Part shown: piece by piece, positions 439-64,000 of the stretch
Layout of the letters: each line of letters begins with the position of its first letter
How positions within the stretch are numbered: position 1 is the first letter of the stretch
Source of the DNA: Bugula neritina
Lineage: Eukaryota > Animalia > Bryozoa
Assembly: GCA_964035545.1 (NCBI GenBank)
Contig: OZ037773.1
Location: 1,827,751-1,891,750 of the forward strand
DNA: 64,000 nt
Direction of reading: 5' to 3'
Program-made: the position numbers and the translations under genes
Notes under the pieces: generated by a model
What the model was told of the DNA's origin: nothing
What the model saw: the letters and a program-made list of their open reading frames with translations, nothing else
Database searches by the model: none

Positions 439-10520
<10,082 letters not shown>

Positions 10521-25374: not shown

Positions 25375-28300
25375 GTGATTTTTGTCTATATAATATTATC
25401 AACACATTTAGAGTATGTAAGCTCATGTCTATATAATATTACTGTCAAAAACATTGTTAGCGGACTGCTTTATTCTCTTCTTTGAAATCTCCTGTTGCCT
25501 CACCTTCTACAATACTCACAATCAACCTGATCTCTTCGTTGTTACAGGACGCACATGTCAAGTTGATACGAGATCTCAGAGGAGAGATAAACAGACTAAG
25601 AGAGCTGCTAGTATCCTCTCATCTGGTCAGTCTATTTTGGAGTTGTCTTCTTACATACTGCTACTGACTGATTACAGCTTCAATGTTCTTTGACTTGGTA
25701 GAAAGCTGTGGCACATTTGATGAAATGTCATGTTGTTTATTGCTAGTTTACTATATCTATCACTTGCTGACACTTGCTGATGCAATCACAAGTACTTGCT
25801 GCCACTTGTCACCTCCACTATTGTCAACCGACTATACTAGTATTCTGCATTACTTCAGGCTCAGTCACCCTCTCTCACCGACATTGACAGTAGCCTAGTA
25901 GAGAAGTTGGAAGAAAACGAGGCTGTAGCCAAATCTATGCTCTCCAACTGGTTAGATAAGTGGCAGGAAGCTCACGATATCATGAAGGTGAAGGTCATAT
26001 TTTGTCCTATGCACACAGTAGCTGTAACTAAAATGTCGGTTTTTGTTGTCTTTAGTGATTACAAATTGGAGTCATACTCCCTGCACAGTCTTTGTTTTGG
26101 TTGTTTGATTCATTTGACTTGCTACATTAAATTATTATGTTTTCTTAAGTTTTCATAGTATGAAATTCAATGTAATAGGTTATATCAGTGTAATATATGT
26201 TGTATAAGATATTATGTTATACATTTTACAACATATATGGTATATATTATATTATATATACGTTGTCAGATGCTATAATAAATATTGTATTACGTACACA
26301 GATGCAATGTTACATTGTATAGTATATTATATATTTTTGTATATAGTATATATTTGTAGTATTATATATGGTGTATAGTAAATATTATATACATATATAT
26401 TATATATATTGCCATATGCAATGCTACAATGTATAGTATATATTATATTATTGTATATATCTCAGGAATCAGATATCATGATCAGACGTGGGAGAAAGAC
26501 AAGCTCCATGGGAGTTATAATAGACTCTCAGTTGCCTCATTTGGTTGGAATGGATGATGATATACTGAGTACCGGAGTCATAATATATCATATCAGAGTA
26601 TGTATTACAGTAATATATCATATCAGAGTATGTATTACAGTTTTATATCATATCAGAGTATGTATTACAGTAATATATCATATCAAAGTATGTATTACAG
26701 TAATATATCATATCAGAGTATGTATTACAGTAATATATCATATCAGAGTATGTATTACAGTAATATATCATATCAGAGTATGTATTACAGTAATATATCA
26801 TATCAGAGTATGTATTACAGTAATATATCATATCAGTGTATGTATTACAGTAATATATCATATCAGAGTATGTATTACAGTAATATATCATATCAGAGTA
26901 TGTATTACAGTAATATATCATATCAGAGTATGTATTACAGTAATATATCATATCAGAGTATGTATTACAGTAATATATCATATCAGAGTATGTATTACAG
27001 TGATATATCATATCAAAGTATGTATTACAGTAATATATATCAGAGTATGTATTACAGTAATATATCATATCAGAGTATGTATTACAGTAACATATCATAT
27101 CAGAGTATGTATTACAGTAATATATATCAGAGTATGTATTACAGTAATACATCATATCAGAGTATGTATTACAGTAATATATCATATCAGAGTATGTATT
27201 ACAGTAATATATCATATCAGAGTATGTATTACAGTAATATATCATATCAGAGTATGTATTACAGTGATATATCATATCAGAATATGTATTACAGTAATAT
27301 ATCATATCAGAATATGTATTACAGTAATATATCATATCAGAATATGTATTACAGTAATATATCATATCAGAATATGTATTACAGTAATATATTATATCAG
27401 AGTATGTATTACAGTAATATATCATATCAGAGTATATATTACAGTAATATATCATATCATGTGTTACTGTAATATATCATCTTGGAGTATGTAACACATC
27501 ACGATATGAAGCTGCAATATATTATATGTAGGTGGGGACAACTACTATTGGAACTGAAAGTTCTGACCGGAGATGTGACATTGTACTGCATGGTCCTGGA
27601 ATAAAGACTGAGCACTGTGTTATCAAGTACACAGATGGGAACGTCTACCTGCTGCCCCACTTTCAAGCTGGTTGCTCAGTGAATGGTGCTGATATAACGG
27701 AAGCTACTAAATTAACTCAGGGTAGGGTGTTGTAGACCTTCCTGCTTTCGTATGACTTTACGTTTTACTTAACAATATTACTAACAATAATCCAGTGCTA
27801 TAATATATTATATATGCTGTATTACTGTAATATATTACAGGTGACGTTATGTTACTGTAATGTGTTACACGCTGCAATGTATTACTATAACATATGACAT
27901 GCGATGTTATATTACTGTAGTATATGACATTCAATGCTATATTAATGTAATATATTACAGGAGATGTTATATTACTGGGCAAGACTAACATGTTTAGATT
28001 CAACAATCCAACAGAAGCTGCGAGACTGAGAAAGAAAAGAAAGGTGAGATATGATATTTTGATGTTTGTATATCATAATCACCTACATGTATCTGTTCAC
28101 AGTATATATTCACAGTATATATTCACAGTATATATTCACAGTAGATATTCACAGTATATATTCACAGTATATATTCACAGTATATACTCACAGTATATAT
28201 TCACAGTATATATTCACAGTATATATTCACAGTATATTATACGCTGTACTTCCAGTAAATTCTCTCACTAATAATAATGTTTGCAGCTAAGACTAAACTG

Positions 28301-40300: not shown

Positions 40301-43300
40301 AGTACTGAGTTATTCAAATTGTTACATTATATTTAATATGATTTACCAAAGAAGATTCTAGACTTGCTGCAGGTTTCTCATTATTTTAGTTGGATACAAC
40401 ACATTTTCAGTTAATTAATGCCCTCTGCTACCAGCTGAGACAGTAATTTGCCAACACCAAACACAGTCTAAACTACCTGTAGTATCATTTGGTGATTTGC
40501 AGCTAACAGAAATCATGCTTCTTATGTTGCAGCCCCGCCTTTGCAACTTGTAACATCTCCGATAACCCGGCCTACACCGAGTCCCTCACTCACAGTCTTG
40601 ATTTCTCTGACTCACTGCCTTTTAAACAACTTCAACCTAAACTCGCAATCCTTCCTTCAACAGACGAGATCAATGCGGAAGAGGCACCAGGAAATGCACT
40701 TGCCGAGAGTAGTCCTCGACCGTCTAGTAGTAAACCTTCTGCCAGAGGTAGCATCAAGTCTAAACGTACGTGTTGAATATATAGTCAGTATACTGTGTGG
40801 TGAATATATAGTCAGTATACTGTGTGTTGAATATATAGTCAGTATACTGTGTGTTGAATATATAGTCAGTATACTGTGTGTTGAATATATAGTCAGTATA
40901 CTGTGTGTTGAATATATAATCAGTATACTGTGTGGTGAATATATAGTCAGTATACTGTGTGGTGAATATATAGTCAGTATACTGTGTGTTGAATATATAG
41001 TTAGTATACTGTGTGGTGAATATATAGTCAGTATACTGTGTGTTGAATATATAGTCAGTATACTGTGTGGTGAATATATAGTCAGTATACTGTGTGTTGA
41101 ATATATAGTTAGTATACTGTGTGGTGAATATATAGTCAGTATACTGTGTGTTGAATATATAGTTAGTATACTGTGTGGTGAATATATAGTCAGTATACTG
41201 TGTGTTGAATATATAATCAGTATACTGTGTGGTGAATATATAGTCAGTATACTGTGTGGTGAATATATAGTCAGTATACTGTGTGTTGAATATATAGTTA
41301 GTATACTGTGTGGTGAATATATAGTCAGTATACTGTGTGTTGAATATATAGTCAGTATACTGTGTGGTGAATATATAGTCAGTATACTGTGTGTTGAATA
41401 TATAGTTAGTATACTGTGTGGTGAATATATAGTCAGTATACTGTGTGTTGAATATATAGTTAGTATACTGTGTGTTGAATATATAGTCAGTATACTGTGT
41501 GTTGAATATATAGTCAGTATACTGTGTGGTGAATATATAGTCAGTATACTGTGTGGTGAATATATAGTCAGTATACTGTGTGGTGAATATATAGTCAGTA
41601 TACTGTGTGTTGAATATATAGTTAGTATACTGTGTGGTGAATATATAGTTAGTATACTGTGTGGTGAATATATAGTCAGTATACTGTGTGTTGAATATAT
41701 AGTTAGTATACTGTGTGGTGAATATATAGTCAGTATACTGTGTGTTGAATATATAGTCAGTATACTGTGTGGTGAATATATAGTCAGTATACTGTGTGTT
41801 GAATATATAGTTAGTATACTGTGTGGTGAATATATAGTCAGTATACTGTGTGTTGAATATATAGTTAGTATACTGTGTGGTGAATATATAGTCAGTATAC
41901 TGTGTGTTGAATATATAATCAGTATACTGTGTGGTGAATATATAGTCAGTATACTGTGTGGTGAATATATAGTCAGTATACTGTGTGTTGAATATATAGT
42001 TAGTATACTGTGTGGTGAATATATAGTCAGTATACTGTGTGTTGAATATATAGTCAGTATACTGTGTGGTGAATATATAGTCAGTATACTGTGTGTTGAA
42101 TATATAGTTAGTATACTGTGTGGTGAATATATAGTCAGTATACTGTGTGTTGAATATATAGTTAGTATACTGTGTGTTGAATATATAGTCAGTATACTGT
42201 GTGTTGAATATATAGTCAGTATACTGTGTGGTGAATATATAGTCAGTATACTGTGTGGTGAATATATAGTCAGTATACTGTGTGGTGAATATATAGTCAG
42301 TATACTGTGTGTTGAATATATAGTTAGTATACTGTGTGGTGAATATATAGTTAGTATACTGTGTGGTGAATATATAGTCAGTATACTGTGTGGTGAATAT
42401 ATAGTCAGTATACTGTGTGTTGAATATATAGTTAGTATACTGTGTGGTGAATATATAGTCAGTATACTGTGTGTTGAATATATAGTTAGTATACTGTGTG
42501 GTGAATATATAGTCAGTATACTGTGTGTTGAATATATAGTTAGTATACTGTGTGTTGAATATATAGTCAGTATACTGTGTGTTGAATATATAGTCAGTAT
42601 ACTGTGTGTTGAATATAGAGTCAGTACAGTGTATGTTGAGCTACTGGTTGTTTTATTATATACAGCTTGTCGTCTGCTAAATGCTTGTCTGCTCTGTCGG
42701 CCACATTGTTTGCAATAATCTACCTATAAATCTGTATTACAGGGGCCCCTTCTACGACGTCTCGCTCCATAATACTAGGAATCAAGGCTAAGTACGGCAA
42801 CAAACGATCTCGTAGAGCTGATATACCCATAGAGATCTTCCTTCCTCCATCTCCACTTTCGTCTAGAGATATTTGCAGTGGTGGTAGTGGAGGAGGGGGA
42901 GGGGGCGGTGTCAGTCCCACCCTTACATCTGGTGAGTGGAATAGTGCATGTTCACAGTCTCTTTAGGTTTGAATAACCTAATGTGCTGAAGTAATTTTAT
43001 TATACTAACAAATTCTAATAGCCTATTGGATAGTGTTAACTATAACTGTCTCTGATTGGCTGATATGTTGTGTGGCTAACATATCCTCGCTGTGATTGGC
43101 TAACACAATATAACCTATACTGTAACTAGCTGATGAAGACATTCTGTTTTTGTCGGATTTTGTACATCTTGCTTATATAAATGAATGCTGTGCGCCTTTG
43201 CAGGACGTTCTAGGAGTTACGGTGAGCAACTGGGGGTACTATGCCCACCAGGAAACTGTATTCTATATCTTGTTGTCTACCCTGTCTGTCATCTCCCCTT

Positions 43301-46300
43301 GGTATAGCAGGTCCACACATGCTTGTTGCGGGCTTTAAATGTTTGTAACGGCGACTATGCTCAACTCCAAATTGAGTGTTCTCTGTGCAGTCTCAGCAGA
43401 AATTCAATCACGCTCATCACCAAACTGTTAGTCTATACTAGCCATTAGAAATGCTATATTCTGCCAAATTAGCTGCTTAATCAAAATTTAATACTTTATA
43501 ACATAACATAGTGTACTTGAGTACATCAACAAGTAAATGTGAGACTTGAGCACATCAACAAGTATGTGTGGGTCTAAATTGACCCAAACTGTCTGGTAGT
43601 GACTGTAGCTTTCCATTTTATTCGCTCTGTTTGTTTCTCGTTTCTCGATGTTATGTCTTGTATTGGTCAAATTTTCCACGGGGATTAATAGTGTCATCAC
43701 GTAGTGTGAGCACGTAGTGTGAGCACGTATGAGGTGTAGACCTAGTCATCAGACTCTAGATATATACCTGGTGCTCATGCTATGAGGTTTGGGCTATAGG
43801 GCTAAGGCTATGAGGTTTGGGCTATGGGGCTAAGGCTATGAGGTTTGGGCTATGGGGCTAAGGCTATGAGGCTTGGAGTTCAAGTTTTGGAGTGTAGACT
43901 TAGTGCTCAGGTTGTAGGGTGTTAGCTTTAGGGCGGTGTCAAAATCTCTCCAACCGTAATGTTTATGCCCCAATTGCTCTGATTGCTTTTAAACAAAATG
44001 AATGTTCTTTTTTAGCTGACAAAGAGATTTTCATACCCTTTGATAAGAACACGATGTTGTTCGCCAAGTCCCTGAGGGATCAGCAACGGTAACGTACTTT
44101 ACTAAATATAAGTCAGTGTATATATACTAGTGTATATATGTTAGTGTATATATGCTAGTGTATACATTTCACTGTAGACATGTTATTGTAGATATGTCAG
44201 TGTAGATATGTCAGTGTATATATGTTAGTGTAGATATGTCAGCGTAGATATGTGAGTGTATATATGTTTATGTAGATATGCTAGTGTATATATGTCAGTA
44301 TATATATGTCAGTGTATATTTGCGAGTGTATATATTCGAGTGTAAATATGTGTATATATATATATGTGTGTGTGTGTGTGTATATATGTATATATGTTAG
44401 TGTATATATATGTTGGTGTATATGTGTATGTATATATGTGAGTGTAGATATGCCAGTGCGCCAACTTTTATATTCTATAATATGAACATGTATGCAGACT
44501 TTCTATTTTGTAATATTTCAGTAAATCCAGCCAATCAGATTCAGTCGGCAGTTCCTCTCGAAAAGGTTCCACAACCAGCAGTACCTCTAAAAGAGGGGAC
44601 GGTTCACGCCGTGCAAGTAAATCTCCTTTAAGTCAGCATGCCACCTTAGAAGGTTTGTCAGTCTTCCTTTACAGTAAAACTGCTGTATGATATGGGGGTG
44701 TAAAGGTGTTGGAGAAGAAGTGTGGGGTGTTGGAGAGAATGGTAGTAGGGGTGTTGGGGGTAGAGGTGTTGGGGATAGAGTTGTTGGAGAGAGTGGTAGA
44801 GGGAGTGTTGGGAGTAGAGGTGTTGGAGAGAGTGGTAGTGGAGGTGTTGGGGGTAGAGGTGTTGGGGGGTAGAGTTGTTGGAGAGAGTGGTAGTGGAGGT
44901 GTTGGGGGTAGAGGTGTTGGGGGTAGAGGTGTTAGGGGTGTTGGAAAAGGTGGGGGTGTTGGCAGGGGTTGAGGTGTCTGTTTAGATTACCTCTGGGACT
45001 GCTGAGTAAAATAGAACACTCTATTAGTAACTGTAAGTCAATCAACTAGAATGTTATTTCATTGTTCCATTGTTATCTAACTTGTAGATACTTACAGTGT
45101 AAGTCAGTTCCACAGAGCACAGAGTGAAACAGACCTCCGCAATGCTAAGGTACATGTCATATATCTATAATATTATATAATGTGGTTCATTTCTCTATAT
45201 TATATAATGTATTTAATATTTTATATTATATAATAACTTCATTTCTATATATTATTATATTACATAATTCACATTTATATATTATATACTGTAACTGATA
45301 TATATATATAATATAATGTAATGTAATTTATGTCTCTATGTTATTTATTGTAGTTCATATTTTTATATTATATTATAATTATATATGCTATACTGAAATG
45401 TAGGAAAACTCCGACTGCACAGAAATGAACCAGCTGGAACAGCAATACCAACACATTTTGGATACGCACAGCGTTACAGATATCAGCTCTGCAGCGAATA
45501 GACTGCCAGGTCAGCTACAGTTTGAGTCACTTTAGTAACATGAATGCTGATTATGTTCAATTATTTTCTAATTTCATGGCTGTTTTAAAAAGTTCAAACT
45601 ATTCAATTTCTGCGCATTAAAAATCACTTTTTACACCCTTTCACAGCAAGTGGTTTTGTATACTCGTAATGTTTATCTCACAGTAATGTTTTCGTAAAAT
45701 AGTCTGTGTTCTAAAATTTATCAATTTTTAGTTTGATTAAACATCATTCTAGTCACTATTCTCCGTTATATTTTCATATGTGATCTCCTGTAGCGGACAG
45801 TATGGATGTCACCACCACTACACAAATGCTTCCCTCAGAAAGTGTCTTGGAGCTACACAGCTCTAACTCATTCGCTAGCATACAGGAAGTAGATGTTACT
45901 ATGGCAACTCAGGTAATTATTTTTAAAGCTAGCTAATATAGCTGTTTCTCATCTCACTGTAGTAAGTAAGTAATATGTTGGTATATAAACAATTCCCTTT
46001 ATATTACTCACATGTCACTCTATTACTCACGTGTCACTCTACTACTCACATGTCACTCTATGACTCTACTACTCATATGTCACTCTACTACTCACATGTC
46101 ACTCTATGACTCTATTACTCACATGTCACTCTACTACTCACATGTCACTCTATTACTCACATGTCACTCTACTACTCACATGTCACTCTATGACTCTACT
46201 ACTCACCTGTCACTCTACTACTCACATGTCACTCTACTACTCACATGTTACTCTACTACTCACATGTCACTCTACTACTCACATGTCACTCTACTACTCA

Positions 46301-49300
46301 CATGTCACTCTAATACTCACATGTCACTCTACTACTCACATGTCACTCTACTACTCACATGTCACTCTATGACTCACATGTCACTCTATGACTCACATGT
46401 CACTCTACTACTCACATGTTACTCTACTACTCACATGTCACTCTACTACTCACATGTCACTCTACTACTCACATGTCACTCTACTACTCACATGTCACTC
46501 TACTACTCACATGTCACTATACTACTCACACGTCACTAATACTCACATGTCACTCTACTATTCACATGTCACTCTACTACTCACGTGTCACTCTAATACT
46601 CACCTGTCACTCTGTTACTCACATGTCACTCTACTACTCACATGTCACTCTACTACTCACATGTCACTCTATGACTCACATGTCACTCTATGACTCACAT
46701 GTCACTCTACTACTCACATGTCACTCTACTACTCACATGTCACTCTATGACTCACATGTCACTCTATGACTCACATGTCACTCTACTACTCACATGTCAC
46801 TCTACTACTCACGTGTCACTCTAATACTCACCTGTCACTCTGTTACTCACATGTCACTCTACTACTCACATGTTACTATACTACTCACTTGTCACTATAC
46901 TACTCACATGTTACTCTATTACTCACATGTCACTCTACTACTCACTTGTCACTCTACTACTCACGTGTCACTCTACTACTCACTTGTCACTCTACTACTC
47001 ACATGTCACTCTACTACTCACATGTTACTCTAAGACTCACATGTCACTCTACTACTCACATGTCACTCTATTACTCACATGTCACTCTACTACTCACATG
47101 TCACTCTAATACTCACATGTCACTCTATTACTCACATGTCACTCTACTACTCACATCTTACTCTACATGACACCCGATCAGTGCTTTCAATATAGACTTA
47201 GAACTTCGAATCTATAGTTTCACTACTGTTAGCAGGCAGAAGAAGTGCCCCCAGTTGTGCAGTTCTATGAAGATGGTGAACCTGTGACCCCAGAAAGTTT
47301 AGCAAAGCGTCAACAACTGACCAAGAAAGCTCTGAAAGCGACGCAAGTAAAATACCGAGAACTGGAAGATGCTGTTATCAGGTAGGCAGCATTGTGAACA
47401 TGTTAATTCCTTCCTCTGAACAGACACTCTGTCTCACCTTGTCTATATCCTGTGAATTCTCACTGAGGTTGAGAAGTTTTATCATGTTGTTAGTGTTAGT
47501 TATCCTTTTCCCTGCCAGTTGTCTCCACTATGTCGGTTGTCATGACAACCATTGCCGGCTTGTCTGTTGCTATGAACTTTACAATTCATTGTTATTACTG
47601 TATGTTAGTTTATCTTAACGCAAGCTACTTTTTTGAAAGTAATATTTTTGCACCCCGTGGTTCTTGCCAGAGTTGAGGCTCCAATTATGATATTATTGAA
47701 ATCATGTGCTTGGAGATAGTACTTCCTTTAGTGCACATAATGATAGCTATAATGCAGCATTGTATCAACAGGTTTCCATATAGTATAAAAGTAATAGTTT
47801 TATATAATGCAGTATATAACAATAGTTTCTTTATAGAAGCTTAAAGTGTAATCAATCCAGAAAGGGAAAATCTTCGACTAAAATATAATTTGCACCTCAT
47901 TGGCTGATCATAGAAAAGTGGTAGCTCTCTTTATAAGTGAATTCTATTATTTTCAATTTCAAGTTCAAACTTGATACAAGATGTGACAAGTGCTTTATGC
48001 ATACTGATATCACATGTATGTGACATTAGCCATTACTTGATCTTTACTGCTTTGACATTAATCATCAGGTGTTCCCCTCTGATGTGACATTTGTCACTAG
48101 GTGCTCTCGTCTGATGTGACATTAGTCACTAAGTGCTCTCTTCTGATGTGACATTTGTCACTAGGTGCTTTCCTCTGATGTGACATTAATCACCAGGTGC
48201 TCTTCTATTGTGACATTTGTCACTAAGTGCTCTCTTCTGATGTGACATTTGTCACTAGGTGTTTTCCTCTGATGTGACATTTGTCACTAGGTGCTCTCTT
48301 CTCATGTGAAACGTGTTACAAAGTGCTACACATGAATGCAGGAGAGCTTATTATTGTAAACATGTGTAAAAATATTGAATATTTTGATCATCAATTATCT
48401 TCATGCTAATAACCAATCAATACGAGACAATAGAGTGGAATATTGATTGTACAAATTGTGTGCTGTAAGTATGGCACCCTGCAGACATTCGCCCTGCATT
48501 GAGTTCGCTGCCGTCAGCTATGTTACCCTCATGAGACTAGAAATGTGATCATCTAGTGTCAGAAATGGGCCATAGCTGGAAGTACTACTTTAATTTATTG
48601 TCTTGTAAGCCTCTCCCATCTTCTCACAGGAAAAAGAGAAGTCGGAGGAAGAAACGGTGAGTTTCGTTGTTTTGGATGTCAGCTTTGTTAATCCTATCAG
48701 AGCAGCCAGCTGTTGTAGCCAGCTTCTAATAATAGCAGTAGAGGCAGCACGTGTGTTGTACTTATGTGCTGTATAATATACTAGTATATACAGAGTATGT
48801 GTTATATACTGTATAATATACTAGTATATACAGAGTGTGTGTTATATACTGTATAATAGAGTAGTATATACAGAGTATGTGTTATATACTGTATAATATG
48901 CTAGTATATACAGAGTATGTGTTATATACTGTATAATATACTAGTACATACAGAGTGTGTGTTATATACTGTATAATATACTAGTATATACAGAGTATGT
49001 GTTATATACTGTATAATATACTAGTATATACAGAGTATGTGTTATATACTGTATAATATACTAGTATATACAGAGTATATGTTATATACTGTATAATATA
49101 CTAGTATATACAGAGTATGTGTTATATACTGTATAATATACTAGTATATAAGCGTACACAGTAAATATATTGTTGCACTGTACTTTTTGTGTGTTGTCAG
49201 TGCATGGCTCAGTAACACTTAGTATCATGGGGAACTGCCACATGGTAGCCTATAACTCTTTTTGGAGTTATCTTATTATTTAATGATATTTAGCTATGTG

Positions 49301-52300
49301 GTTATCAATCAAGTATCAAATTCAACACTAGAGGGCATACAATCTGTCATTTACTGTATTTAGAATTAGACTTAATTTATAGTGAAGTACTAATCTATTT
49401 GATGTGTTAAATTTATATTTCTGTTATTTTTCATCTGATTGCTTAATGTATTCGATTACATTAGCTGTCTACAATTCTATTAATTTAGTATTGTGTTGTT
49501 TGACTGGAATCTCAAGTCTGTAATTTAGTTTGAATTGTTGGTATGATTTTCTAGAAGAAAAAAACACATTGAAAATCTGAAAAGGGGAGGGGGTTAAGAG
49601 CATCACACTTTAACTTACACCGCTTTTGATTTCTAGAGCTGCATTTAGACTTTTCTTGAACATAATATTGCCTGAGTTGTTTGATAAACTCATCCTTCAC
49701 TTTTGCAGTTTGTGCATTTTACAATTTTCTTCAAGCTTTATTTAATGTGTGTGCAGTTTAGAGGTAATTGTGGTGTTTCAGCTGCGTTGGAATGCACTGC
49801 TTCATACTAACATTAAATGTAGAGTTTGTATAAGAAACATACTTGTATACTATAATATACTGTATACTATATACTGCATACTATAATACACTGTATACTA
49901 TATTATACTGTATACTATAATATACTGTATACTATATACTGCATACTATAATATACTATATACTATATTATACTGTATACTATATTATACTGCATACTAT
50001 AATATACTATATACTATATACTATAATATACTGTATACTATATACTGCATACTATAATATACTATATACTATATTATACTGTATACTATATTATACTGCA
50101 TACTATAATATACTATATACTATATACTATAATATACTGTATACTATATACTGCATACTATAATATACTATAATATACTGTATACTATATACTGTATACT
50201 ATAATATACTGTATACTATAATATACTGTATACTATATACTGCATACTATAATATACTGTATACTATAATATACTGTATACTATATACTGCATACTATAA
50301 TATACTATATACTATATTATACTGTATACTATATTATACTGCATACTATAATATACTATATACTATATACTATAATATACTGTATACTATATACTGCATA
50401 CTATAATATACTATATTATACTGTATACTATATTATACTGCATACTATAATATACTATATACTATATACTATAATATACTGTATACTATATACTGCATAC
50501 TATAATATACTATATACTATATACTATAATATACTGTATACTATATACTGCATACTATAATATACTGTATACTATAATATACTGTATACTATATACTGCA
50601 TACTATAATACACTGTATACTATATTATACTGTATACTATAATACTGTATACTATATACTGTATACTATATTATACTGTATACTATATTATACTGTATAC
50701 TATATTATACTGTATACTATAATACTATATACTGTATACTGTATACTATATACTGTATACTATATACTGTATACTGTATACTATATTATACTGTATACTA
50801 TATTATACTGTATACTATAATACTGTATACTATATACTGTATACTGTATACTATATACTGTATACTATATTATACTGTATACTATATTATACTGTATACT
50901 ATAATACTATATACTGTATACTATATACTGTATACTATATACTGTATACTATATTATACTGTATACTATAATACTATATACTGTATACTATATACTGTAT
51001 ACTATATACTGTATTCTATATAACTAGTTGGTTAACACATTGAGCATTACATTTAAGTATTAATTACAAGCTGGGTGTAGTTGCTGTGATTACATTTAAA
51101 TGCTGTTTTCCACTTCAAGTCTACAGTTCATTGCCTTGTCTCGTAGTTAATTAGTTTTTCTAAAATTGAATGTGCTAAGAAAATGAGTGGAGCTGGTGAT
51201 TTATTCTTCACATATATTTTATTATTAGAAATGTTGGACGAAGCTGATGAAACATGTAGCTGCCAATGTTGTCCTCTAGGCAGCATTGTTTTAGTTTGTA
51301 TTATTTACATTAGTTTCAAGTTGCTATAAATCAATGTTACACACACATCAATCTGGCCACTAGAACTAGTGTGTTGCAGGTTTAAAAGTTTCATGCATTA
51401 CTGCTCTGACACACATAAATATGTGCACAACACTTCGCATCTAATAACTATTTAGTCTTAATATTGTAAAGCATAATATGTTATATAGAGTATACTATTA
51501 CTTATTTTGTAATATTATCCCTATATAATATAAGGCATTATGTTTTATAGTGTTATATTTGTATGGTATTCTTTATATGGTATATTGTCTATATACTCTA
51601 TAATATTATATATTGTATAATATATGATGTGGCATAACATTATGATTTAATGGTGCAGCCAACTTGAATTGAGTTAGATATGGGAATTTTCTGCTCGATT
51701 CAGGATCATCATTCACATGGTTAGAAGATGAATGCCTGTATGGGAGTGCATGCTGTGCAAGCATTGTAATCTCAACTCTACTAAATTTATATTATTGCGT
51801 GTATTGTTTGAGTTTATTTGTTTAAACATGTTGATGAATGCAAACATTGCTTGGAAGTGTATGGGAACATTATTGTAATATTATTACAGATGGATATGAT
51901 GTATAAAATAAGCAATTACATGAGCTTAGTGTTTTATCTTATACATTGATATACGACTTCTCCTGATTGGTCAATCTACTGCTGCCAGCTACGTACTAGT
52001 GCAGTCTATGTTGAATCAGAACAGTTAAATGTCAGTTGACAATTCACTGCAGTACAGAAGCTGTTAGTCTCGCTTTTTGGATTTATACTGGTTGCTCATA
52101 TATCTGCTGATACCTTTACTGGCTGCTGATACCTTAATGGTTGCTGATACTTTTACTGGCTGCTGATACATAAATCTGCTGTCTGCTGATACTTTTACTG
52201 ACTGTAAATATTTTGCTAGTGCAGGTTATGCTATCTTCCACACATTTTTATGGACTCTCACGCTCTGTATAATGGATTATAAAAGTCAAGTCAACAAACT

Positions 52301-55300
52301 ATAGAAGCAATTTATTCAATCCCCTGAGAGGGTGTTTGCCTCTGGTAGGCAGCGCATTGACTCTGTATGCACTGAGGCAGCAGTGAGGCAGCAGTGAGGG
52401 GTGTGAATTCGTGTAGCTCCATACGCAGGTGGTGTAGGTGCCACCCTATACAAAGCTAACAAGAGAGGCATGGTCATACACCTTTAGCTGTCCTATAAAT
52501 GGCAGCAGGGTAGAGCACTTCACAGTATAATCTCGGATTGTATAGGATGGGGGGCTGTCAGGGCAAATCTCCCAGCAGGAGGAAGAGAAAACGGAGGAAG
52601 ATAAAGTTGTAAGAATAGTTTATAAAGCTATATCACTGTGTTTGTGTTGGTGGTGATAACCTTTCGGTTTTAGAGTGTGTTATGTTCATTTGGGGAATTT
52701 ATCAGTTAGTTTAGCTGCAAGCTCTTACCAACTGAAAGTCTAGTATGATATAGCTAGTAATATTGACACCATGTCGTGTGTATTTACTTCTCTTAAAGTG
52801 CTGTGATGATTGTGGGGTAAAAGTGTGAAAGCTGCATAACCGAAAAGTAGATATTTTTAAAATAAAGGGACAACTCCAACATTTTGGGTTCACTTGTTTG
52901 TATCTTTCCTTCAAAACACAGTTAATATGGTAGTTAATATGGTAGTTGACATGATGTATAGCAGTGTTAAAGTAGAGTCATAGTACAATATGCTAGTTGT
53001 ATTCAACTTATTCTAAAGTCTCTCTCGTAGCATTTTTCAAATTGATGAATTAATGCTTGCATTTAGTATGCTTGACAATTTAACTGTATGATTTTTTACC
53101 ACTTGATATTCTATTATTAACACAAAAAGTTTTAGTGTTTTGAGCCTCTTTTACTATTGAATTCACCATTTCTTATAGATTGCTGATAATTATTCTATTG
53201 GACCACTATGTTTATTATTGTGTAGCTATTCTATATTTACCCACTTTGTTGGTTTTTACCAACTTAGCAGCACTAGATGTACAGAAAGGCTGTTTTGCAT
53301 GTTAGAAAGTGTTGCACCACTCAACTTACTAACTATCTTATACAGCTTGTCATGTTCATTACTAACTGAAATGTTACACTGTGTGTATGCAGGCCTTTTA
53401 TTATAGCAACCATACAAATACTTCTACTATTCCTATTAATATTTTAACATCTGGGCTGCGTTCAATTGGCCATATATTGCATGCCCTGCTATATATTCAA
53501 TTTACTGCTATATATTCAATTTACTGCTGTGTATTCAATATGCTGCTGTATAATATTCAGGTTATCCTTATTACTAGTTCCATCACTGAGAGAAGACAAC
53601 TCTGCATTATGAATATATATTATTCTTATTGTTAAGTGCACACGACCTTGTTATTTCCACAGGGTGTGCATAGCTTGTGAATTTGCTCTATAATTCTGGC
53701 TGTATCTTGTACAATGTAATACAACATGTATTAGTACATTTACTACAACATGTATTAATACATGTAATACAACATGTACTGCAACATGTATTAGTACATG
53801 TAATTATACAACATGTATTAGTACATGTAATTATACAACATGTATTAGTACATGTAATTATACAACATGTATTAGTACATGTACTACAAAATGTATTACA
53901 GTTGTGTGTTGTGTTTTTAGAGCCACTAAAGCCCGGCAGCAGAACTTAAACAGACCTAGAGATGACTCATTCTCCGAAGATTCACTGAAAGGTCTGTCAA
54001 CACTTTTAGAATAATATGTATTACTATTACAGCATATTACTATATTATTACATTGTTATATTATTGTTATACCGTATTATCGTATTGTGATATTAAATTG
54101 TTGTATATAACTATATCATATATGATATTGCTATAGCATATATAAACTCAGGCAAGTTTATATATGCTATAACTATATCATATGATATTGCTATAGCATA
54201 TATAAACTCAGGCAAGTTTATAGTCACCATTCCTGGGAGAAACCCTGATGAGAAGGTTTTTACTAAATTGAGCTAAGGACTTATTCATCTATGTGGCACA
54301 GGAGCAATTATTACTGGATACTCTTCCTAGCATCACCAATGGTCTTTACTGGGGTTCAACCCCATGACTACTGTGCTTACTAAACCAACACTCTTATTCC
54401 TGGACCACAACTGCTCCCTTATTGCTATAGCATATAGTAGTACTCTATTATCGCATTACTATATATTTGTATTACTATGTTACTATATTACTATATTACT
54501 ATATAGTATGGTATTACTATATTACTGTATTACTATATTACTATATAGTATGGTATTACTATATTACTATATAGTATGGTATTACTATATTACTGTATTA
54601 CTATATATTATGGTATTACTATACTATATTAATGTATATCACATGGTATTATTATGTAACTTGGCAGGTGAACAGCAAGCAGCAAGACTTGATAGGAGAA
54701 AGCGAAGGATTTCCTCAACACTCAAGGCAGCCAATAAGGAATCAGATAACTTTAGTGAGAGTGATGCCGCGCTGTCAGATGACAGTCTGGCTGAGCCAGT
54801 CATCAAGCGCAGGTCAGTTTATCTCTTTTAAATGTCAGCTGATAGAGTAACCTTGTAACGCTATTGTTTGCTTCTCCTTATACTTGTAGTTTCACTTTAG
54901 TTTTTCTTTATATAATTGCAGTTTAGTCGTTCTCCATATATATGTACTTTTACTTTAGTCTTCATGTAACTGTAGTTTCGCTTTATTTATTCTTCATATA
55001 AATGCAGTTTCACTTTAGTTATTCTCCTTATAATTGTAGTTCATCTGCTCAAAGGCAAGCAGAAGAATTGTTCAGACTGAGAGAAGAGTTTATGGATGCA
55101 AAGTTCAGTGTTAAGAAGGACCTCGTTGTTCAGGCACATCCTTCCTGGGACTGTCTGAGCGCTGCCGCAGTAGTAGAGCTTCCGACAGTAGTTTCATGTT
55201 GTACGTCACTCTGTACTATACTCTGTACTATACTCTGTACTATACTCTGTACTATACTCTGTACTATACTCTGTACTATACTCTGTACTATACTCTGTAC

Positions 55301-58300
55301 TATACTCTGTACTATACTCTGTACTATACTCTGTACTATACTCTGTACTATACTCTGTACTATACTCTGTACTATACTCTGTACTATACTCTGTACTATA
55401 CTCTGTACTATACTCTGTACTATACTCTGTACTATACTCTGTACTATACTCTGTACTATACTCTGTGCTATACTCTGTGCTATACTCTGTGTACTATACT
55501 CTGTGTACTATACTCTGTACTATACTCTGTACTATACAGAGTATAGTATAGTATAGTATAGTTTAGCACTATACTCTGTGCTAAACACTGTATTATACTC
55601 TGTGCTAAACACTGTATTATACTCTATAGTATACTCTGTACTATACTCTGTATTATACTCTGTATTATGCTGTGCATTATAATGTATTACACACTGCACT
55701 ATACCGCAATGTGCGCTGTTTTATATATTATATTGTACTCTGCACCTTATAGGGTTTATACTATTATTATATTATGTTACACTCCTCATCATATACTATT
55801 ATACAGATCACGCCGCTCCAGCTATCAGAAAACCTATTTTAAATTTGGATATCCATAGACTGAGCTCTACACCTGTGGATGTCTGGAGCTCAGTCTATTC
55901 TCAATCTACATCCGCCGACAAGTTCATGGTCACTGCTAGACCTACCAACAGCAACGCCAAGCGTAAGTTATTTTCCTTTTCAGCTTTTCTATGACATCAC
56001 ATCCTGTTATTAGTGCATGTGTTCTCTACTCACCTATCTACTCTATGATATCACATCCTGTTGCTAGTCAGTGTGATTTGCTTTTTCTTTTCCATTTTAA
56101 ATTCATGGAGAATAATTAAAACATTGAGTTTTTGTAACAATCTCGTGGTCTGTAGGTGGGATGTGTACCCAGTCAAGGACTGATGTGTGGGGCTCTATTC
56201 ACCCGTCACATCTATCAGATACAGGTCTTCGGGCTATAGTTGTTGATGAAGTTCATTGCCAATGTTCTGAAGAAGGATTAGAGTTTAAGGGTGGGCTAGG
56301 CAGTAACCCTCTAGCAAGATCTACTGTTTCTATTGTTAGCTATGATGGTAAGTAGTTGACGACTTCTGATGTCCTCAAGTCACACTTGAGGTCTGAATAA
56401 AAACACCAGAATATTATATAATTTCTTAAAAAGAAACAAAAAATAATATACAAGATCTACCAAAACTGCAAGGTCATAATTTCTTGTCTCATTCGTATAA
56501 ACATTGAACAACACTTCAACATTCTTCACATTTTAATTTATTTTGCTTGTAATAGTCAACTGTTTGAAGAAAAATCTCGTGATTTTCTTATAGATTCCGA
56601 GTCGTTGGCCAAAGCTAGCACAGCTACCAGTGCTCTTTTACTTGGAGCACCGAGTGACACCTGTTCTACTAACACCAATGACCTGCTGGCAGATGTCACA
56701 GTTGTCAACTCAACTTTATCTGACTCATTCACTGCCACTAAACAAGTGCCTGCAGCTAATGAAGCACCTGCCTCTGAGACCTATATGACTGTCGACTTGT
56801 TGACAGCTGAACAAGAACTTGATCAGGTTGATGGAAATGGTCATACGAAAGCAGATTATTTTCTCTCTTCTCACCGAACACCTGTCTCTACCTGTCACCA
56901 ACCCAGTCTCTCACTCAACATTAAAGGTAGATTAGAGAGTCAGTGCTGTAGATCTGTCTGTAAACATACATGTATAATCAGCAAATGAAACTGTAAATCT
57001 CTGGAAAGTGTTTTAGTAGACTGTAAACTTCTCTTCAACACTTGCAACGTTTCTCTGCATTATTTCTTCTTCCTGTTTCAGATGCTGACTCAGATGACAC
57101 GGATGAACTTCTAGCTTGTCGTCCAATCAATACAGCTCAAGAACTAAAAGCCAATGAAATGTATGTTTACACTTGACGTACTGAGTGTTGGATGTATTTT
57201 ATCTGTTTCCTTTTGCACTTGCTGCTTGATGCCTTGTTTATTACAAGTTTCCCATTTTGTTTTGCTACTCATTATTTTTTATGCCAATTTATGTCCAAAC
57301 TAATATTTTGTTATATTTTGTTGTTATTGTTACATTATTTTGCTGGTCTGTCTAGATTAGCACATGTTACTCACCAGTCACCTGTTGTCACATGCCAGCT
57401 CAATAATGACACTCATGACTCACCTGCTGTCACTTGTCAACTTGACACTGACACCTGTGACTCACCTGCTGATTCACCGCTATCTATACAACAAATAGCC
57501 CAGCTTTTAGTTGATGAGGTCCTTAAAAAGAGTGTGGCGTTGGTGTCAGCTACAGCTCTTGCTTCTAGTGTCACGGAGGATGTTGTTGTGACGGAAGTTT
57601 ATTTTAGTGACTCCAGCTCTGAGAAAAGGTGCTTTTTGTGAAACATTGGAATTGTAGTTAGAGTTCTCTATCTATCTCTAAACCTTGCAGTGTAGTACTA
57701 ATGTTGTGTAACATAATATATTCAGTTATGAGAAGCTTATCTGTCCACTGAACTTGATTTGAACTAAGATTGATGCTCAGTTTGTCTTCCAAGCAAATTC
57801 CTGCTTACTTTTTTTTAACATTTTTAAAATACAAGGATTCATTCTTGTGTTGACAAACTAATATTAATTTTCATACCATGATAATCAGTTCGGTTCCTAA
57901 TTCACGTCAAAGTTTAACCCTCACTTTATGACATTGTAGCGTGAAAAAACGGTATGATTTCAACTCCCTAGTATACCAGTGTGCATCACTTCATTCCACT
58001 GCTTTCTTTTGATGCCATCAATCAGCTGTTTGCTTCTCATGCGTTGGTTTCTTCTTCTGTTTGTTACAAGTTTCTGCTGCTGTTTCTTTCCTCTTTCTAT
58101 TTTTTGTGATGAGACTTAGGGAACGAATAATTGAACATTCCGTATTGGTATTTTTAATATTGTCTGTGAGGCTAATTATGTGGCTACTATATCAATTGGT
58201 GACTGAAAGGCAAGAGTGACTGTGTAGTAAGAGTGACTGTGTAGTAAGCGTGACTGTGTAGTGAGAGTTGTTGTATAGTCAGAGTGACTGCGTAGTGAAA

Positions 58301-61300: not shown

Positions 61301-64000
61301 ATAGTATGTAAAGTATATAGTATATATAGTATATAGTATATAAAGTATATAGTATATAAAGTATACAGTATATATAGTATATAGTATATATAGTATATAA
61401 AGTATATAGTATATAAAGTATATACTATATAAAGTATATAGTATATAAAGTATATAGTATATAAAGTATATAGTATGTAAAGTATATAGTATATAAAGTA
61501 TATAGTATATAAAGTATATAGTATATAAAGTATATAGTATATAAAGTATATAGTATATAAAGTATATAGTATATAAAGTATATAGTATATAAAGTATATA
61601 CTATATAAAGTATATAGTATATAAAGTATATAGTATATAAAGTATATAGTATGTAAAGTATATAGTATATAAAGTATATAGTATATAAAGTATATAGTAT
61701 ATAAAGTATATAGTATATAAAGTATATAGCATACAAAGTATATAGTATATAAAGTATATAGTATATATAGTATATAGTATATAAAGTATATAGTATATAA
61801 AGTATATAGTATATAAATTATAAAGTATATAGTATATAAAGTATATAGTATATAAAGTATATAGTATATAAAGTATATAGTATATATAGTATATACTATA
61901 TAAAGTATATAGTATATAAAGTATATAGTATACAGTATATAAAGTATATAGTATATAAAGTATATAGTATATGAAGTATATAGTATATAAAGTATATAGT
62001 ATATAAAGTATATAGTATACAGTATATAAAGTATATAGTATATAAAGTATATAGTATATAAAGTATATAGTATATAAAGTATATAGTATATAAAGTATAT
62101 AGTATATAAAGTATATAGTATATATAGTATATAGTATATATAGTATATAAAGTATATAGTATATAAAGTATATAGTATATAAAGTATATAGTATATAAAG
62201 TATATAGTATATAAAATATATAGTATATATAGTATATAGTATATAAAGTATATAGTATATAAAGTATATAGTATATAAATTATAAAGTATATAGTATATA
62301 AAGTATATAGTATATAAAGTATATAGTATATAAAGTATATAGTATATAAAGTATATAGTATATATAGTATATACTATATAAAGTATATAGTATATAAAGT
62401 ATATAGTATACAGTATATAAAGTATATAGTATATAAAGTATATAGTATATGAAGTATATAGTATATAAAGTATATAGTATATAAAGTATATAGTATACAG
62501 TATATAAAGTATATAGTATATAAAGTATATAGTATATAAAGTATATAGTATATAAAGTATATACTATATAAAGTATATAGTATATAAAGTATATAGTATA
62601 TAAAGTATATAGTATATAAAGTATATAGTATATAAAGTATATACTATATAAAGTATATAGTATATAAAGTATATAGTATATAAAGTATATAGTATATAAA
62701 GTATATAGTATATAAAGTATATAGTATATATAGTATATAGTATATATAGTATATAAAGTATATAGTATATAAAGTATATAGTATATAAAGTATATAGTAT
62801 ATAAAGTATATAGTATATAAAGTATATAGTATATATAGTATATACTATATAAAGTATATAGTATATAAAGTATATAGTATATAAAGTATATAGTATATAT
62901 AGTATATACTATATAAAGTATATAGTATATAAAGTATATAGTATACAGTATATAAAGTATATAGTATATAAAGTATATAGTATATGAAGTATATAGTATA
63001 TGAAGTATATAGTATATAAAGTATATAGTATATAAAGTATATAGTATACAGTATATAAAGTATATAGTATATAAAGTATATAGTATATGAAGTATATAGT
63101 ATATAAAGTATATAGTATATAAAGTATATAGTATATAAAGTATATAGTATATAAAGTATATAGTATATAAAGTATATAGTATATAAAGTATATAGTATAT
63201 AAAGTATATAGTATATAAAGTATGTAGTATATAAAGTATATAGTATATAAAGTATATAGTATGTAAAGTATATAGTATATAAAGTATATAGTATATAAAG
63301 TATATAGTATGTAAAGTATATAGTATATGAACACAATGGTATGATGCAGGCGGAGAAAGCATCACGTTTGTTTTCATGACTCGCTCGCACAGTGCTGATG
63401 AAATTAACGCAGACGACACAGTTTCTGAAGATCTAGACATTAATGAAGTGTTTGGTAGAAGTTCTTGTGATGTAGACAGCACTTTAGGGTCAAAGGTCAG
63501 ACATATATGTTATCTGTATCTGTTTATTTTACAGCTGGAGTTACTGCTCACCAACCGGTAGGGAAAAACCTCACTATGATTGGCTAATCACATTTATTAA
63601 ATAATCGTGCAAACTACACAAAGCAATATTTCCTGACCACGCTGTTTATGATTTGCGATAAGGCACCATCTGAATGAAGCTTTCAAAATGCTGATTTGTG
63701 TTTATTTTGTCCTGACTGGTACATTCTAAGTTCTTTTATCCGTGGGTAAGCGATAGACCAGGCTCCATGTCTAATTAGGCTATTCTAGTGACCGCAGTTG
63801 TTTACTTTTCACTTTTTATCACTGTTGCTGTATTTACTTGCAGGCTGATGTCCAGGTTGTAAGATATACATCAGAGCCAAACCTCCGCTCCAGGTCGCCC
63901 AATGAGGTCTCTCCTAGAGTCTGTACCAGTCCACGCTCTCTCACTCTGTTTGCTGACAGCGTGGACATCAATGACAGTGGTGAATTATCTCCTCACCTAC
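16408..64000 (+). CDS. STARD9: Kinesin-3 STARD9/KIF16A-like protein (motor, FHA, coiled coil, long Ser-rich tail); runs off the window end
   Basis: Phase-consistent exon chain: 16408-16454, 16684-16753, 18382-18504, 21627-21735, 22035-22149, 22472-22599, 22788-22857, 23165-23305, 24008-24108, 24768-24992, 25277-25374, 25548-25625, 25859-25987, 26466-26597, 27532-27721, 27961-28043, 28944-29101, 29293-29313, 30919-30972, 33720-33758, 34865-34994, 35494-35584, 35834-35998, 37478-37626, 38070-38381, 38558-38733, 39001-39325, 39617-39774, 40533-40765, 42743-42931, 44016-44088, 44522-44652, 45088-45149, 45404-45509, 45794-45912, 47236-47381, 48630-48656, 53921-53991, 54668-54812, 55040-55200, 55807-55962, 56156-56347, 56594-56926, 57082-57160, 57356-57628, 58561-58651, 58761-59139, 59539-59712, 59854-59964, 60365-60412, 60520-60660, 63350-63495, 63844->64000. 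STARD9 is favoured over KIF16B by [27 protein letters not shown], the Ser-rich loop-12 insert and the very long tail. Tail exons rest on splice signals and frame only. Confidence 0.8.
17424..17715. repeat. 36-bp minisatellite containing AAGTAAGT
   Basis: About 8 units of ATAAAGTAAGTAGTGTATTGTCATAGTATATTTACT. Confidence 0.9.
18540..18872. repeat. (GTA/GTG/ATA)n compound trinucleotide repeat
   Basis: Read directly. Confidence 0.95.
22202..22412. mobile_element. Tc1/mariner-superfamily (Tigger-like) MITE
   Basis: TA|CAGTGCTCTCTACATATCT ... AGATACAGAGGGAGCGCTG|TA: imperfect inverted ends flanked by TA. Confidence 0.5.
23304..23482. repeat. 20-bp minisatellite AGGTAAGTTACAGTAGATGT spanning the donor of kinesin exon 8
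   Basis: About 8 units, some degenerate. Confidence 0.9.
24121..24435. repeat. 23-bp minisatellite TATATTATGTAATCATATTCTAG
   Basis: Read directly. Confidence 0.85.
26466..28043 (+). CDS. STARD9: Kinesin-3 FHA-domain exons
   Basis: [22 protein letters not shown] | VGTTTIG...[16 protein letters not shown]...[14 protein letters not shown] | [24 protein letters not shown], the KIF16-type FHA region. Confidence 0.92.
26581..27492. repeat. 30-bp minisatellite TAATATATCATATCAGA|GTATGTATTACAG (about 30 copies) spanning the exon-14 donor
   Basis: The first unit comprises the last 17 nt of exon 14 plus the 5' splice site. Confidence 0.97.
28096..28238. repeat. 13-bp minisatellite CACAGTATATATT
   Basis: Read directly. 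Confidence 0.9.
29364..29377. promoter_or_regulatory. RFX X-box motif in a kinesin intron
   Basis: GTTGCTATGGTAAC matches the X-box consensus GTTRCYATGGNAAC. Confidence 0.5.
29844..30070. mobile_element. hAT (Charlie-like) MITE
   Basis: Terminal inverted repeats CAGGGGTGGGCAACT / AGTTGCCCACCCCTC, internal GGGCC motifs, and 8-bp flanks ATATATAG / ATATATAT. Confidence 0.8.
30076..30293 (-). mobile_element. tRNA-derived SINE, copy 2
   Basis: Minus strand reads GGGAGCAGCTGTGGTCTAGAGGTTAGAGCG...GGGTTTGAACCCC, then AGGAAGTGCATCCAG...TGTGCC. Homologous to copy 1. Confidence 0.87.
30480..30890. repeat. 21-bp minisatellite AGTATAGAGTATAGAATACAC
   Basis: Read directly. Confidence 0.85.
30993..31633. 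repeat. 42-bp minisatellite (about 15 copies)
   Basis: Unit ATTATATATCTGTATATATTCTTATATCATACATCTCAACAT; the ORF track shows the matching 14-aa period. Confidence 0.93.
35664..35800. mobile_element. Short foldback/MITE with ~43-bp imperfect terminal inverted repeats
   Basis: Left end CTATAAGCAGCTCTGATTTGGGGGTGACTGAGTGCAATAGTTT versus the reverse complement of the right end, CTATAAGCAGCTCCGAGTTGGAGGTGACTGAGTGCCATAGTTT. The end GGAGCTGCTTATAG recurs at 14714-14727. Confidence 0.75.
36345..37360 (+). mobile_element. 5'-truncated LINE (CR1/L2/Crack-type reverse transcriptase C-terminus)
   Basis: [10 protein letters not shown] (FADD at 36353-36364) is in frame with ORF 36404-36958 ([49 protein letters not shown]). 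A frameshifted [10 protein letters not shown] follows, then a (CAAA)n tail near 37340-37355. Confidence 0.9.
37850..38069. repeat. 19-bp minisatellite TGTG(T/C)TGACAGTACAATGA ending at a 3' splice site
   Basis: About 11 units, running into GTGTTCTCTAG|exon 38070. Confidence 0.92.
40770..42625. repeat. 27-bp minisatellite (about 68 copies) with higher-order structure
   Basis: Unit TGAATATATAGT(C/T)AGTATACTGTGTG(G/T); a marker variant recurs at 40911, 41208 and 41910. Confidence 0.97.
44695..44972. repeat. G-rich degenerate repeat (GTGTTGGGGGTAGAG)
   Basis: Read directly; multiple G4-G6 runs. Confidence 0.8.
46003..47165. repeat. 19-bp minisatellite ACTCACATGTCACTCTACT (about 60 copies)
   Basis: Read directly. 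Confidence 0.96.
47536..47549. promoter_or_regulatory. Palindromic RFX X-box motif
   Basis: GTTGTCATGACAAC is a perfect 14-bp palindrome. Confidence 0.45.
48050..48308. repeat. 32-bp minisatellite with internal palindrome GTGACA-TT-TGTCAC
   Basis: About 8 units of TCTGATGTGACATTTGTCACTAGGTGCTCTCT. Confidence 0.88.
48769..49150. repeat. 40-bp minisatellite (about 9 copies)
   Basis: Unit GTATAATATACTAGTATATACAGAGTATGTGTTATATACT. Confidence 0.93.
49843..51020. repeat. Compound (TATAC/ACTGT) satellite
   Basis: Read directly. Confidence 0.93.
52494..52500 (+). promoter_or_regulatory. TATA box of a candidate internal promoter
   Basis: TATAAAT, followed about 25-30 nt later by an Inr-like CTTCACAGT; it lies 53 nt before the MGGC ATG. 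Confidence 0.45.
52547..52608 (+). CDS. Candidate alternative first (or cassette) coding exon [20 protein letters not shown](L) of the kinesin locus
   Basis: ATG at 52547 and a GTAAGA donor at 52609 in phase 2, matching the phase-2 acceptor at 53921. TATAAAT lies at 52494. An AG at 52544-45 would also allow in-frame internal use. Confidence 0.6.
54203..54418 (-). mobile_element. tRNA-derived SINE, copy 3, with a 17-bp target-site duplication
   Basis: Homologous to copies 1 and 2; TATTGCTATAGCATATA occurs at 54186-54202 and 54420-54436. Confidence 0.87.
55201..55540. repeat. 12-bp minisatellite GTACTATACTCT, starting at the donor GTACGT
   Basis: Read directly. Confidence 0.95.
59163..59465. 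repeat. 27-bp minisatellite CTGCAGTTACTCTACAGAGTGAATCTG
   Basis: Read directly. Confidence 0.92.
60047..60211 (-). mobile_element. tRNA-derived SINE, copy 4 (diverged, partial)
   Basis: CCCTGATGG...TGTGGCACAAGAGTAATTATGACCAGATACTC...GGGATTCGAACCC; the minus strand gives a perfect B box GGGTTCGAATCCC. Confidence 0.75.
60750..63330. repeat. 16-bp satellite GTATATAAAGTATATA (about 2.3 kb) with a degenerate 5' part
   Basis: Read directly. The variant AAATT at 61815 and 62277 marks an internal ~462-bp duplication. Confidence 0.96.

Follow-up and report, generated by a model that had tools for sequence, protein, structure and literature searches.

The locus described here raises the question of whether the gene of a giant kinesin can also make, from a promoter inside one of its own introns, a second product that keeps the kinesin tail and lacks the motor. 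The locus lies on contig OZ037773.1 of the Bugula neritina assembly GCA_964035545.1, and we analysed 64,000 nucleotides of it (positions 1,827,751 to 1,891,750, forward strand), called the window below and numbered from its first letter. A sequence-only reading of the window had noticed a TATA box, an ATG and a splice donor deep in an intron of a STARD9 kinesin gene, and had proposed that they could start a motor-less, lipid-anchored isoform acting as an A-kinase anchoring protein (AKAP). Our analysis favours an internal promoter of a STARD9-family gene which yields a motor-less tail isoform with a predicted lipid-anchor N-terminus, a reading that we hold to be reasonably probable, and leaves the AKAP role unsupported.

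Internal promoter and alternative first exon

The TATA box, the ATG and the GTAAGA donor are located at the positions given for them in the sequence-only reading. Together with the exons that the short form has in common with the long form, they make up the following series of features.

52494-52499, + strand: TATAAA, TATA box of the internal promoter (from the sequence)
52518-52546, + strand: 5' untranslated part of the alternative first exon, minimum extent (X4 RNA contig)
52547-52608, + strand: coding part of the alternative first exon, 62 nt, 20 codons and 2 nt (sequence and RNA contigs X2 and X4)
52609-52614, + strand: GTAAGA donor of the alternative first exon (junction used in RNA contigs)
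53921-53991, + strand: first shared exon, contains ATKARQQ (joints 52607/8 to 53921 and 53991 to 54668)
54668-54812, + strand: shared exon, contains RRKRRISS (RNA joints in four runs)
55040-55200, + strand: shared exon (joint 54812 to 55040; loose end at 55200 reads into 55807)
55807-55962, + strand: shared exon (loose-end RNA sequence)
56156-56347, + strand: shared exon, predicted (splice sites and open frame)
56594-56926, + strand: shared exon, predicted (splice sites and open frame)
57082-57160, + strand: shared exon, predicted (splice sites and open frame)
57356-57628, + strand: shared exon with an amphipathic helix at 57486-57536 (open frame chain)

The ATG at 52547 has A at -3 and G at +4, with an in-frame TAG upstream at 52511 and no further ATG in 52500-52547. 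The exon 52547-52608 ends in phase 2 and joins in frame to 53921-53991. A TATAAA lies 20-34 nt upstream of only 3.8% of window positions, and the new exon with its promoter is present as a single copy in the 216-Mb assembly. Two acceptors could turn the exon into an internal one: AG 52544-52545, preceded by a poor pyrimidine tract, would give an in-frame exon of 63 nt, and CAG 52576-52578 would give an in-frame exon of 30 nt. Rfam and tRNA scans of 51-58 kb gave no match.

RNA contigs across the new junction

The RNA evidence consists of assembled contigs from runs X1, X2, X4 and X10 aligned over 51100-55205, a span that begins downstream of the exon at 48630 and ends with the exon 55040-55200. 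None of the runs found is on record as RNA, and they comprise small-share runs of the same organism and a 'symbiont metagenome' RNA-Seq sample. Single contigs of 1,038 letters (X2, study P2) and 1,060 letters (X4, study P3) carry, without gaps, the joints 52607/8 to 53921, 53991 to 54668 and 54812 to 55040, and both continue from 55200 into sequence starting at 55807. As the sequence left out at each joint begins with GT and ends with AG on the + strand, the contigs are spliced RNA of that strand. The junction from 52608 to 53921, foreseen in the sequence-only reading, is therefore present in the RNA contigs of two independent studies, and the joints at exon 54668-54812 are seen in all four runs.

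The last 90 letters of the X4 contig correspond to 52518-52607 without a gap, running colinearly through both AG 52545 and CAG 52578. The contig ends at 52518, which is 24 nt past the first T of the TATA box and next to the starts at about 52520-52530 that had been predicted. The X2 contig ends at 52562, where an Illumina adapter starts, and passes CAG 52578 unspliced. The colinearity of the X4 contig and its spacing from the TATA box show that the exon is 5'-terminal in these transcripts and not only a cassette, so that purely internal use through AG 52545, an outcome that the sequence-only reading had allowed for, does not agree with the RNA. Upstream of the new start, intronic RNA is found at 51634-52059 (X1) and 52179-52352 (X4), in keeping with a longer pre-mRNA that crosses the intron. 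An X1 contig begins precisely at 53922, where a branch of the assembly graph would be expected; like the intronic RNA, this supports a promoter that is internal to the kinesin gene.

The codon at the junction is TCA or TCG (Ser) in the contigs versus TTA (Leu) in the assembly. With a divergence of 3-5% from the assembly, as high in introns as in exons, the RNA contigs hold no information on constraint of the new exon. They stem from a divergent haplotype, population or sibling form, which suggests very high heterozygosity or a sibling complex under one name.

Two further features were seen in this region. An 11-nt direct repeat (GCAGCAGTGAG-type) is located at 52359-52395, about 130 nt upstream of the TATA box, and the X1 contig is one copy short (11 letters left out at 52373), so that the promoter is polymorphic in length. 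Within the intron, the interspersed element at 54114-54387 finds matches in hundreds of divergent RNA contigs, their summed depth reaching about 110,000 (X1). No tRNA gene (ARAGORN) and no Rfam family was found in this element, which is probably a highly expressed or very abundant repeat resembling a short interspersed nuclear element.

Host gene and its predicted long form

Upstream of the new exon, the host gene is represented by the following exons.

21627-24991 (contig 1849377-1852741), + strand: kinesin motor exons (four exon-level PF00225 matches)
27541-27732, + strand: FHA-domain exon (PF00498, 42.4 bits, E 1.9e-8)
47236-47381, + strand: predicted exon of the long form, ending in ...YRELEDAVI, phase fitting the next exon (splice sites and frame, not RNA)
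48630-48656, + strand: predicted basic microexon of the long form, 27 nt, 10 residues, ending in phase 2 (splice sites and frame)

The frame 24746-24994 matches PF00225 with 41.8 bits in Pfam; among the ten motor, FHA and tail frames searched against Pfam, Kinesin was the only match and the tail frames were blank. The best full-length relatives of the FHA exon, in a search of 1.84 billion representative proteins, are giant kinesins of 3,600-6,450 residues from scallop, oyster, hemichordate, starfish, sea urchin and many vertebrates. The vertebrate matches carry the name stAR-related lipid transfer protein 9 (STARD9), and the FHA scores of KIF16B proteins are level with or below those of the giant kinesins. 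Judged by these domains, the host locus is a STARD9/KIF16A-family kinesin-3 gene, as the sequence-only reading had assumed.

The new exon lies in the intron 48657-53920 (5,264 nt), whose upstream border would be formed by the microexon. This microexon has a strong pyrimidine tract, a CAG acceptor and a GTGAGT donor, contains no stop, and fits exon 53921 in phase. From the phase, from orthology and from the intronic RNA, we infer that the long form splices from 48656 to 53921 across the same intron. A weak, colinear-looking BLAST match of the junction region (exons 47236, the microexon, 53921 and 54668) to residues 2376-2414 of the scallop protein was rejected as homology to the mollusc giants, as a two-sequence profile scored -3.9 bits and 1,752 of 2,000 shuffles were as good or better. 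A protein search with exon 55040-55200 gave no candidates, the full-length relatives being outside the length range searched.

Distal tail block and START domain

The search for the tail was extended 30 kb past the window end, with the extended coordinates counted from window position 1. Open frames of the host gene run on to about 74.3 kb, and the next gene, for a kinesin light chain, starts at about 88.6 kb. The scallop protein and vertebrate STARD9 have in common a block of about 220 residues, which lies a few hundred residues short of the C-terminus. When the tail was searched with 32 giant relatives by strict tblastn, no match was found at E<=1e-3; a profile of the conserved block alone, built from 12 family proteins, succeeded and matches the + strand frame 71017-71229 with E 3.5e-7 among 2,660 frames. 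Next in rank are three weaker frames, all of them colinear + strand exons, at 69.6, 73.2 and 73.4 kb, so that the block is situated 17-21 kb downstream of the new exon. Its core reads LAEAQLNYAFGQTDTLL here, LLEAKLNYCIGQTDTLL in scallop and LAEAKLNYGIGETDALL in vertebrates, with GQTDTLL identical here and in the scallop protein. The motor and FHA domain at one end of the locus and the tail block at the other are the two ends of one protein elsewhere, which is our strongest reason for placing the promoter inside the kinesin gene. This places both ends of the locus in the family that the sequence-only reading had named.

A START domain downstream, which that reading had mentioned conditionally, was not found: PF01852 has no match on the whole of contig OZ037773.1, even at E<=10. 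Among the relatives, the proteins of sea urchin, starfish and hamster carry START, and no match to it was found in the models of scallop, oyster and hemichordate. The missing domain in the mollusc and hemichordate models means that its absence here fits a START-less branch of the family, and the gene is best called a START-less STARD9-family member on the basis of these matches. Vertebrate StARD9 was described in 2012 with motor, FHA and START, and as vertebrate-only (PMC3383713). Contrary to that report, the distribution of the domains indicates that the STARD9 family is not vertebrate-only: the mollusc giants, with motor and FHA, share the distal tail block (69631-73638 of the extended sequence), and the echinoderm giants carry START.

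The core LAEAQLNYAFGQTDTLL, at 71068-71130 of the extended sequence and thus past the window end, is the most conserved tail motif of the family. The vertebrate core contains ETDALL, which fits the dileucine pattern [DE]xxxL[LI]; here and in molluscs Gln takes the place of the acidic residue at -4. PMC10203878 describes vertebrate StARD9 as a lysosomal kinesin with a conserved dileucine signal near the C-terminus and with a membrane association that resists extraction by salt and carbonate. The vertebrate core may be this lysosomal targeting signal, its identity with the signal being that of a candidate only.

Predicted short-form protein

From the ATG at 52547, a chain of nine exons is open for 490 codons. 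It includes the in-phase splice to exon 53921 and reaches, seven exons after it, the 17-residue helix (residues 444-460), in agreement with the sequence-only reading. The transcript would encode a protein without motor and FHA domain whose tail is common to the long form.

N-myristoylation follows a PROSITE-type pattern, G-{EDRKHPFYW}-x(2)-[STAGCN]-{P}. The new N-terminus MGGCQGK fits this pattern and offers Cys4 as a candidate for palmitoylation, and residues 7-21 hold 10 Lys/Arg, which form a polybasic run. On the + strand of the window, ATG 52547 is unique in opening at least 20 codons with the N-myristoylation pattern and a Cys at residues 3-6. The N-terminus is thus a good candidate for a lipid anchor, as predicted from the sequence.

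The basic half of the new exon resembles the microexon that the short form skips, in the following stretch.

52567-52601, + strand: part of the new exon aligned to the acceptor and body of the microexon (48618-48652), local score 33

The alignment also holds a relic pyrimidine tract and a relic CAG acceptor (52576-52578), and its score of 33 exceeds the highest value, 30, reached by 300 shuffles and about 640 other segments of the window. It is probable from this comparison that the basic half of the exon is a duplicate of the 27-nt microexon. The alignment suggests a likely history in which the microexon was first copied in tandem and the copy afterwards acquired, on the 5' side, a promoter, an AUG and the extension MGGCQGKSP. 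As a basic patch stands just before ATKARQQ in both isoforms, it seems to have a role of its own, possibly in nuclear import.

Evaluation of the alternatives

According to the favoured reading, the window holds the gene of a giant kinesin-3 in which a motor and an FHA domain are followed by a disordered tail of great length and a C-terminal tail block, without START. A TATA-type promoter in the 5.3-kb intron produces a second transcript from about 52518, whose first exon (to 52608) is spliced to 53921 and whose first AUG, in strong context, opens the frame of the long form. The product, if made, would be the tail without motor and FHA domain. Its 20 new residues would most likely be a three-part membrane anchor, composed of N-myristoylated Gly2, palmitoylated Cys4 and an electrostatic polybasic patch, and would bind the protein to membranes. 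In favour of such binding is the tight membrane association of vertebrate StARD9 (PMC10203878). The short form would keep the basic patch by means of the copied microexon, both isoforms being basic just before ATKARQQ.

Several points weigh against parts of this reading. The end of a contig is not a mapped cap site, so the contig end at 52518 matches the predicted start in position only, and the contigs give neither proof of the transcription start nor an expression level. The joint from 48656 to 53921 is a predicted one, the RNA alignment covering 51100-55205. The SH4-type N-terminus proposed by the sequence-only reading holds as far as the myristoylation pattern, the cysteine and the basic run are concerned; residue 6, however, is Gly and not the preferred Ser or Thr, the basic run doubles as a good nuclear localisation signal, and the anchor is predicted from a sequence pattern alone. 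Gly2 and Cys4 are read from the letters of the assembly, from which the contigs diverge by 3-5%, and the account of the new exon covers this one genome. The duplication score of 33 versus 30 is marginally above background.

These points bear most directly on the lipid anchor. The transcript could be real and carry no anchor, the Arg/Lys run being a nuclear localisation signal or a patch for nucleic acid or an acidic partner, as the microexon patch would be in the long form; the short form would then be a fragment of the tail that is soluble or enters the nucleus, or else a by-product with little translation. Besides Gly at residue 6, this explanation has in its favour the similar patch before ATKARQQ in both isoforms, apparently copied from the microexon, which suggests a role without lipid. 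However, MGGCQGK fits the N-myristoylation pattern next to a Cys in a combination unique in 64 kb, its AUG is the first of the transcript and in strong context, and MGGCQGKSP is new sequence 5' of the copied patch, as if kept for a purpose; we consider an anchorless short form unlikely, though with a real share of the probability. It is improbable that the locus holds two separate genes, with the kinesin ending upstream of 52.5 kb and the MGGC exon starting an independent 'tail' gene. In favour of this division, the contigs of both runs that include the exon follow the MGGC path and not the kinesin path, whose joint is a predicted one. Against this division stand the scallop, oyster, echinoderm and vertebrate relatives, which carry motor and FHA together with the tail block in one protein, and the microexon 48630-48656, whose splice sites are strong, which has no stop and whose phase is the same as that of the new exon; the RNA contigs moreover include intron sequence upstream of the new start, and the X1 contig has its first letter at 53922, where the assembly graph would be expected to branch. 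Even less probable is that the exon serves mainly as an internal exon of the long form through AG 52545 (63 nt) or CAG 52578 (30 nt), either as a cassette or in mutual exclusion with the 27-nt microexon, with Gly2 rarely N-terminal. Both acceptors would keep the frame and the exon resembles a tandem microexon copy with its acceptor, but the X4 contig passes both acceptors to 52518, the X2 contig passes CAG 52578 to 52562, and the pyrimidine tract before AG 52545 is poor; some internal use may occur beside the use as a first exon.

The AKAP function claimed for the short form is a separate matter. Small acylated AKAPs (AKAP7-alpha/AKAP18-alpha and smAKAP) start with Met-Gly and a nearby Cys as lipid anchor; they are small proteins, and their RII- or RI-binding helix is experimentally defined. 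By analogy, the short form would be a membrane-tethered AKAP that binds the RII dimer of cAMP-dependent protein kinase (PKA) through its 17-residue helix. The helix does fit the hydrophobic spacing of RII binding twice (residues 444 and 448), a PKA-type site, RRKRRIS, is present in exon 54668, and the genome encodes three RII-like (L012, L014, L016) and one RI-like (L013) regulatory subunits. However, at least one match to the spacing occurs in 60% of composition-matched shuffles of the same 490 residues, and another 18-residue segment of the short form is more amphipathic than the helix. No conservation of the helix was detectable in 16 family members, where its best local matches score 24-31 and the means of shuffled helices are 29-31. 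Unlike the helices of the small acylated AKAPs, the one here is non-significant, non-conserved and about 440 residues away from the anchor, in a protein of probably thousands of residues. These comparisons leave the AKAP role unsupported, and we give an AKAP function little credence. Each PKA regulatory gene of this genome has a RIIa docking exon and cyclic-nucleotide-binding exons within about 4-13 kb, and SPA17-like (L011) and ROPN1-like (L018) RIIa proteins are also encoded.

Comparison with known systems

Truncated isoforms from internal promoters and isoform-specific N-myristoylation are known; the kinesin/STARD9 case is without found precedent. The literature searched, which gives partial coverage and no proof of absence, held no natural motor-less or acylated isoform of a kinesin or of STARD9, in line with the sequence-only reading, to which no such arrangement in STARD9/KIF16A was known.

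A close likeness in design is alphaKAP, the non-kinase product of the CaMKII-alpha gene, which is transcribed from an intronic promoter. Like the predicted short form, alphaKAP is without the catalytic domain of its host, has its own membrane-targeting N-terminus and a nuclear localisation signal, and has its C-terminal part in common with the enzyme, and it anchors full-length CaMKII subunits to membranes (PMC6288437). In contrast, its anchor is hydrophobic while a myristoyl/palmitoyl/polybasic one is predicted here, its host is a kinase and not a motor, and hetero-oligomerisation of the two forms would here be hypothetical. Short nesprins are, according to PMC3981789 and PMC4924313, products of giant genes with internal promoters that lose the N-terminal cytoskeleton-binding domains and keep the C-terminal part. 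All nesprin forms carry a C-terminal KASH transmembrane anchor, whereas the anchor predicted here is N-terminal and isoform-specific. For the sperm hexokinase HK1S, PMC4736023 reports a variant-specific N-terminus whose fatty acylation redirects the isoform to the membrane; HK1S keeps its catalytic domains, and its acylation is experimental whereas ours is predicted. Vertebrate STARD9/KIF16A resembles the gene described here in the kinesin-3 motor, the FHA domain, the giant disordered tail and the tail block (LAEAKLNYGIGETDALL there, LAEAQLNYAFGQTDTLL here), and differs in its START domain, which is absent here as in the mollusc orthologues.

Kinesin genes are usually seen as makers of motors, and a tail with its own promoter and anchor would give such a gene an inherent regulator of, or receptor for, the cargo site of the motor. 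By analogy with alphaKAP and CaMKII, it is conceivable, though improbable in our estimate, that in the START-less (lophotrochozoan-type) branch a lipid-anchored, motor-less tail serves as the membrane receptor of the motor and recruits or regulates the full-length kinesin through the shared tail block. Such a receptor would be held at an organelle or at the plasma membrane by its myristate, its palmitate and its basic patch, and would supply the tight membrane link that vertebrate StARD9 reaches otherwise. The model touches the carbonate-resistant membrane association of vertebrate StARD9, which is unexplained (PMC10203878), and the present case offers a defined 20-residue signal, a promoter and a junction.

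Other features of the window and the assembly

The introns of the gene are packed with long minisatellites, which create long spurious open frames. The following stretches were noted on reading the window.

26581-27492: minisatellite
40700-42700: minisatellite
46000-47170: minisatellite
48760-49140: minisatellite
49830-51010: minisatellite
53680-53900: minisatellite
55208-55550: minisatellite
61400-63500: minisatellite

A tandem repeat at 55208-55466 lies between shared exons, and the repeat family at 62-64 kb is found again on many chromosomes. Three neighbouring features were recognised by eye: from open frames, a NEMF/Tae2-like gene upstream (900-9500, + strand) and the kinesin light chain gene downstream (88611-90600 of the extended sequence, + strand), and, within a kinesin intron, a reverse-transcriptase fragment of a retrotransposon lacking long terminal repeats (36404-36958, + strand).

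Many small contigs of the assembly (for example C58:1258-2193, C233:4822-5826, C148:4225-5142, C166, C132) contain intron-less matches to kinesin, FHA and cyclic-nucleotide-binding domains. These matches have several in-frame TAA/TAG codons and almost no TGA, which is the pattern of a ciliate-type genetic code, and an associated or contaminating protist is therefore probably present in the assembly.

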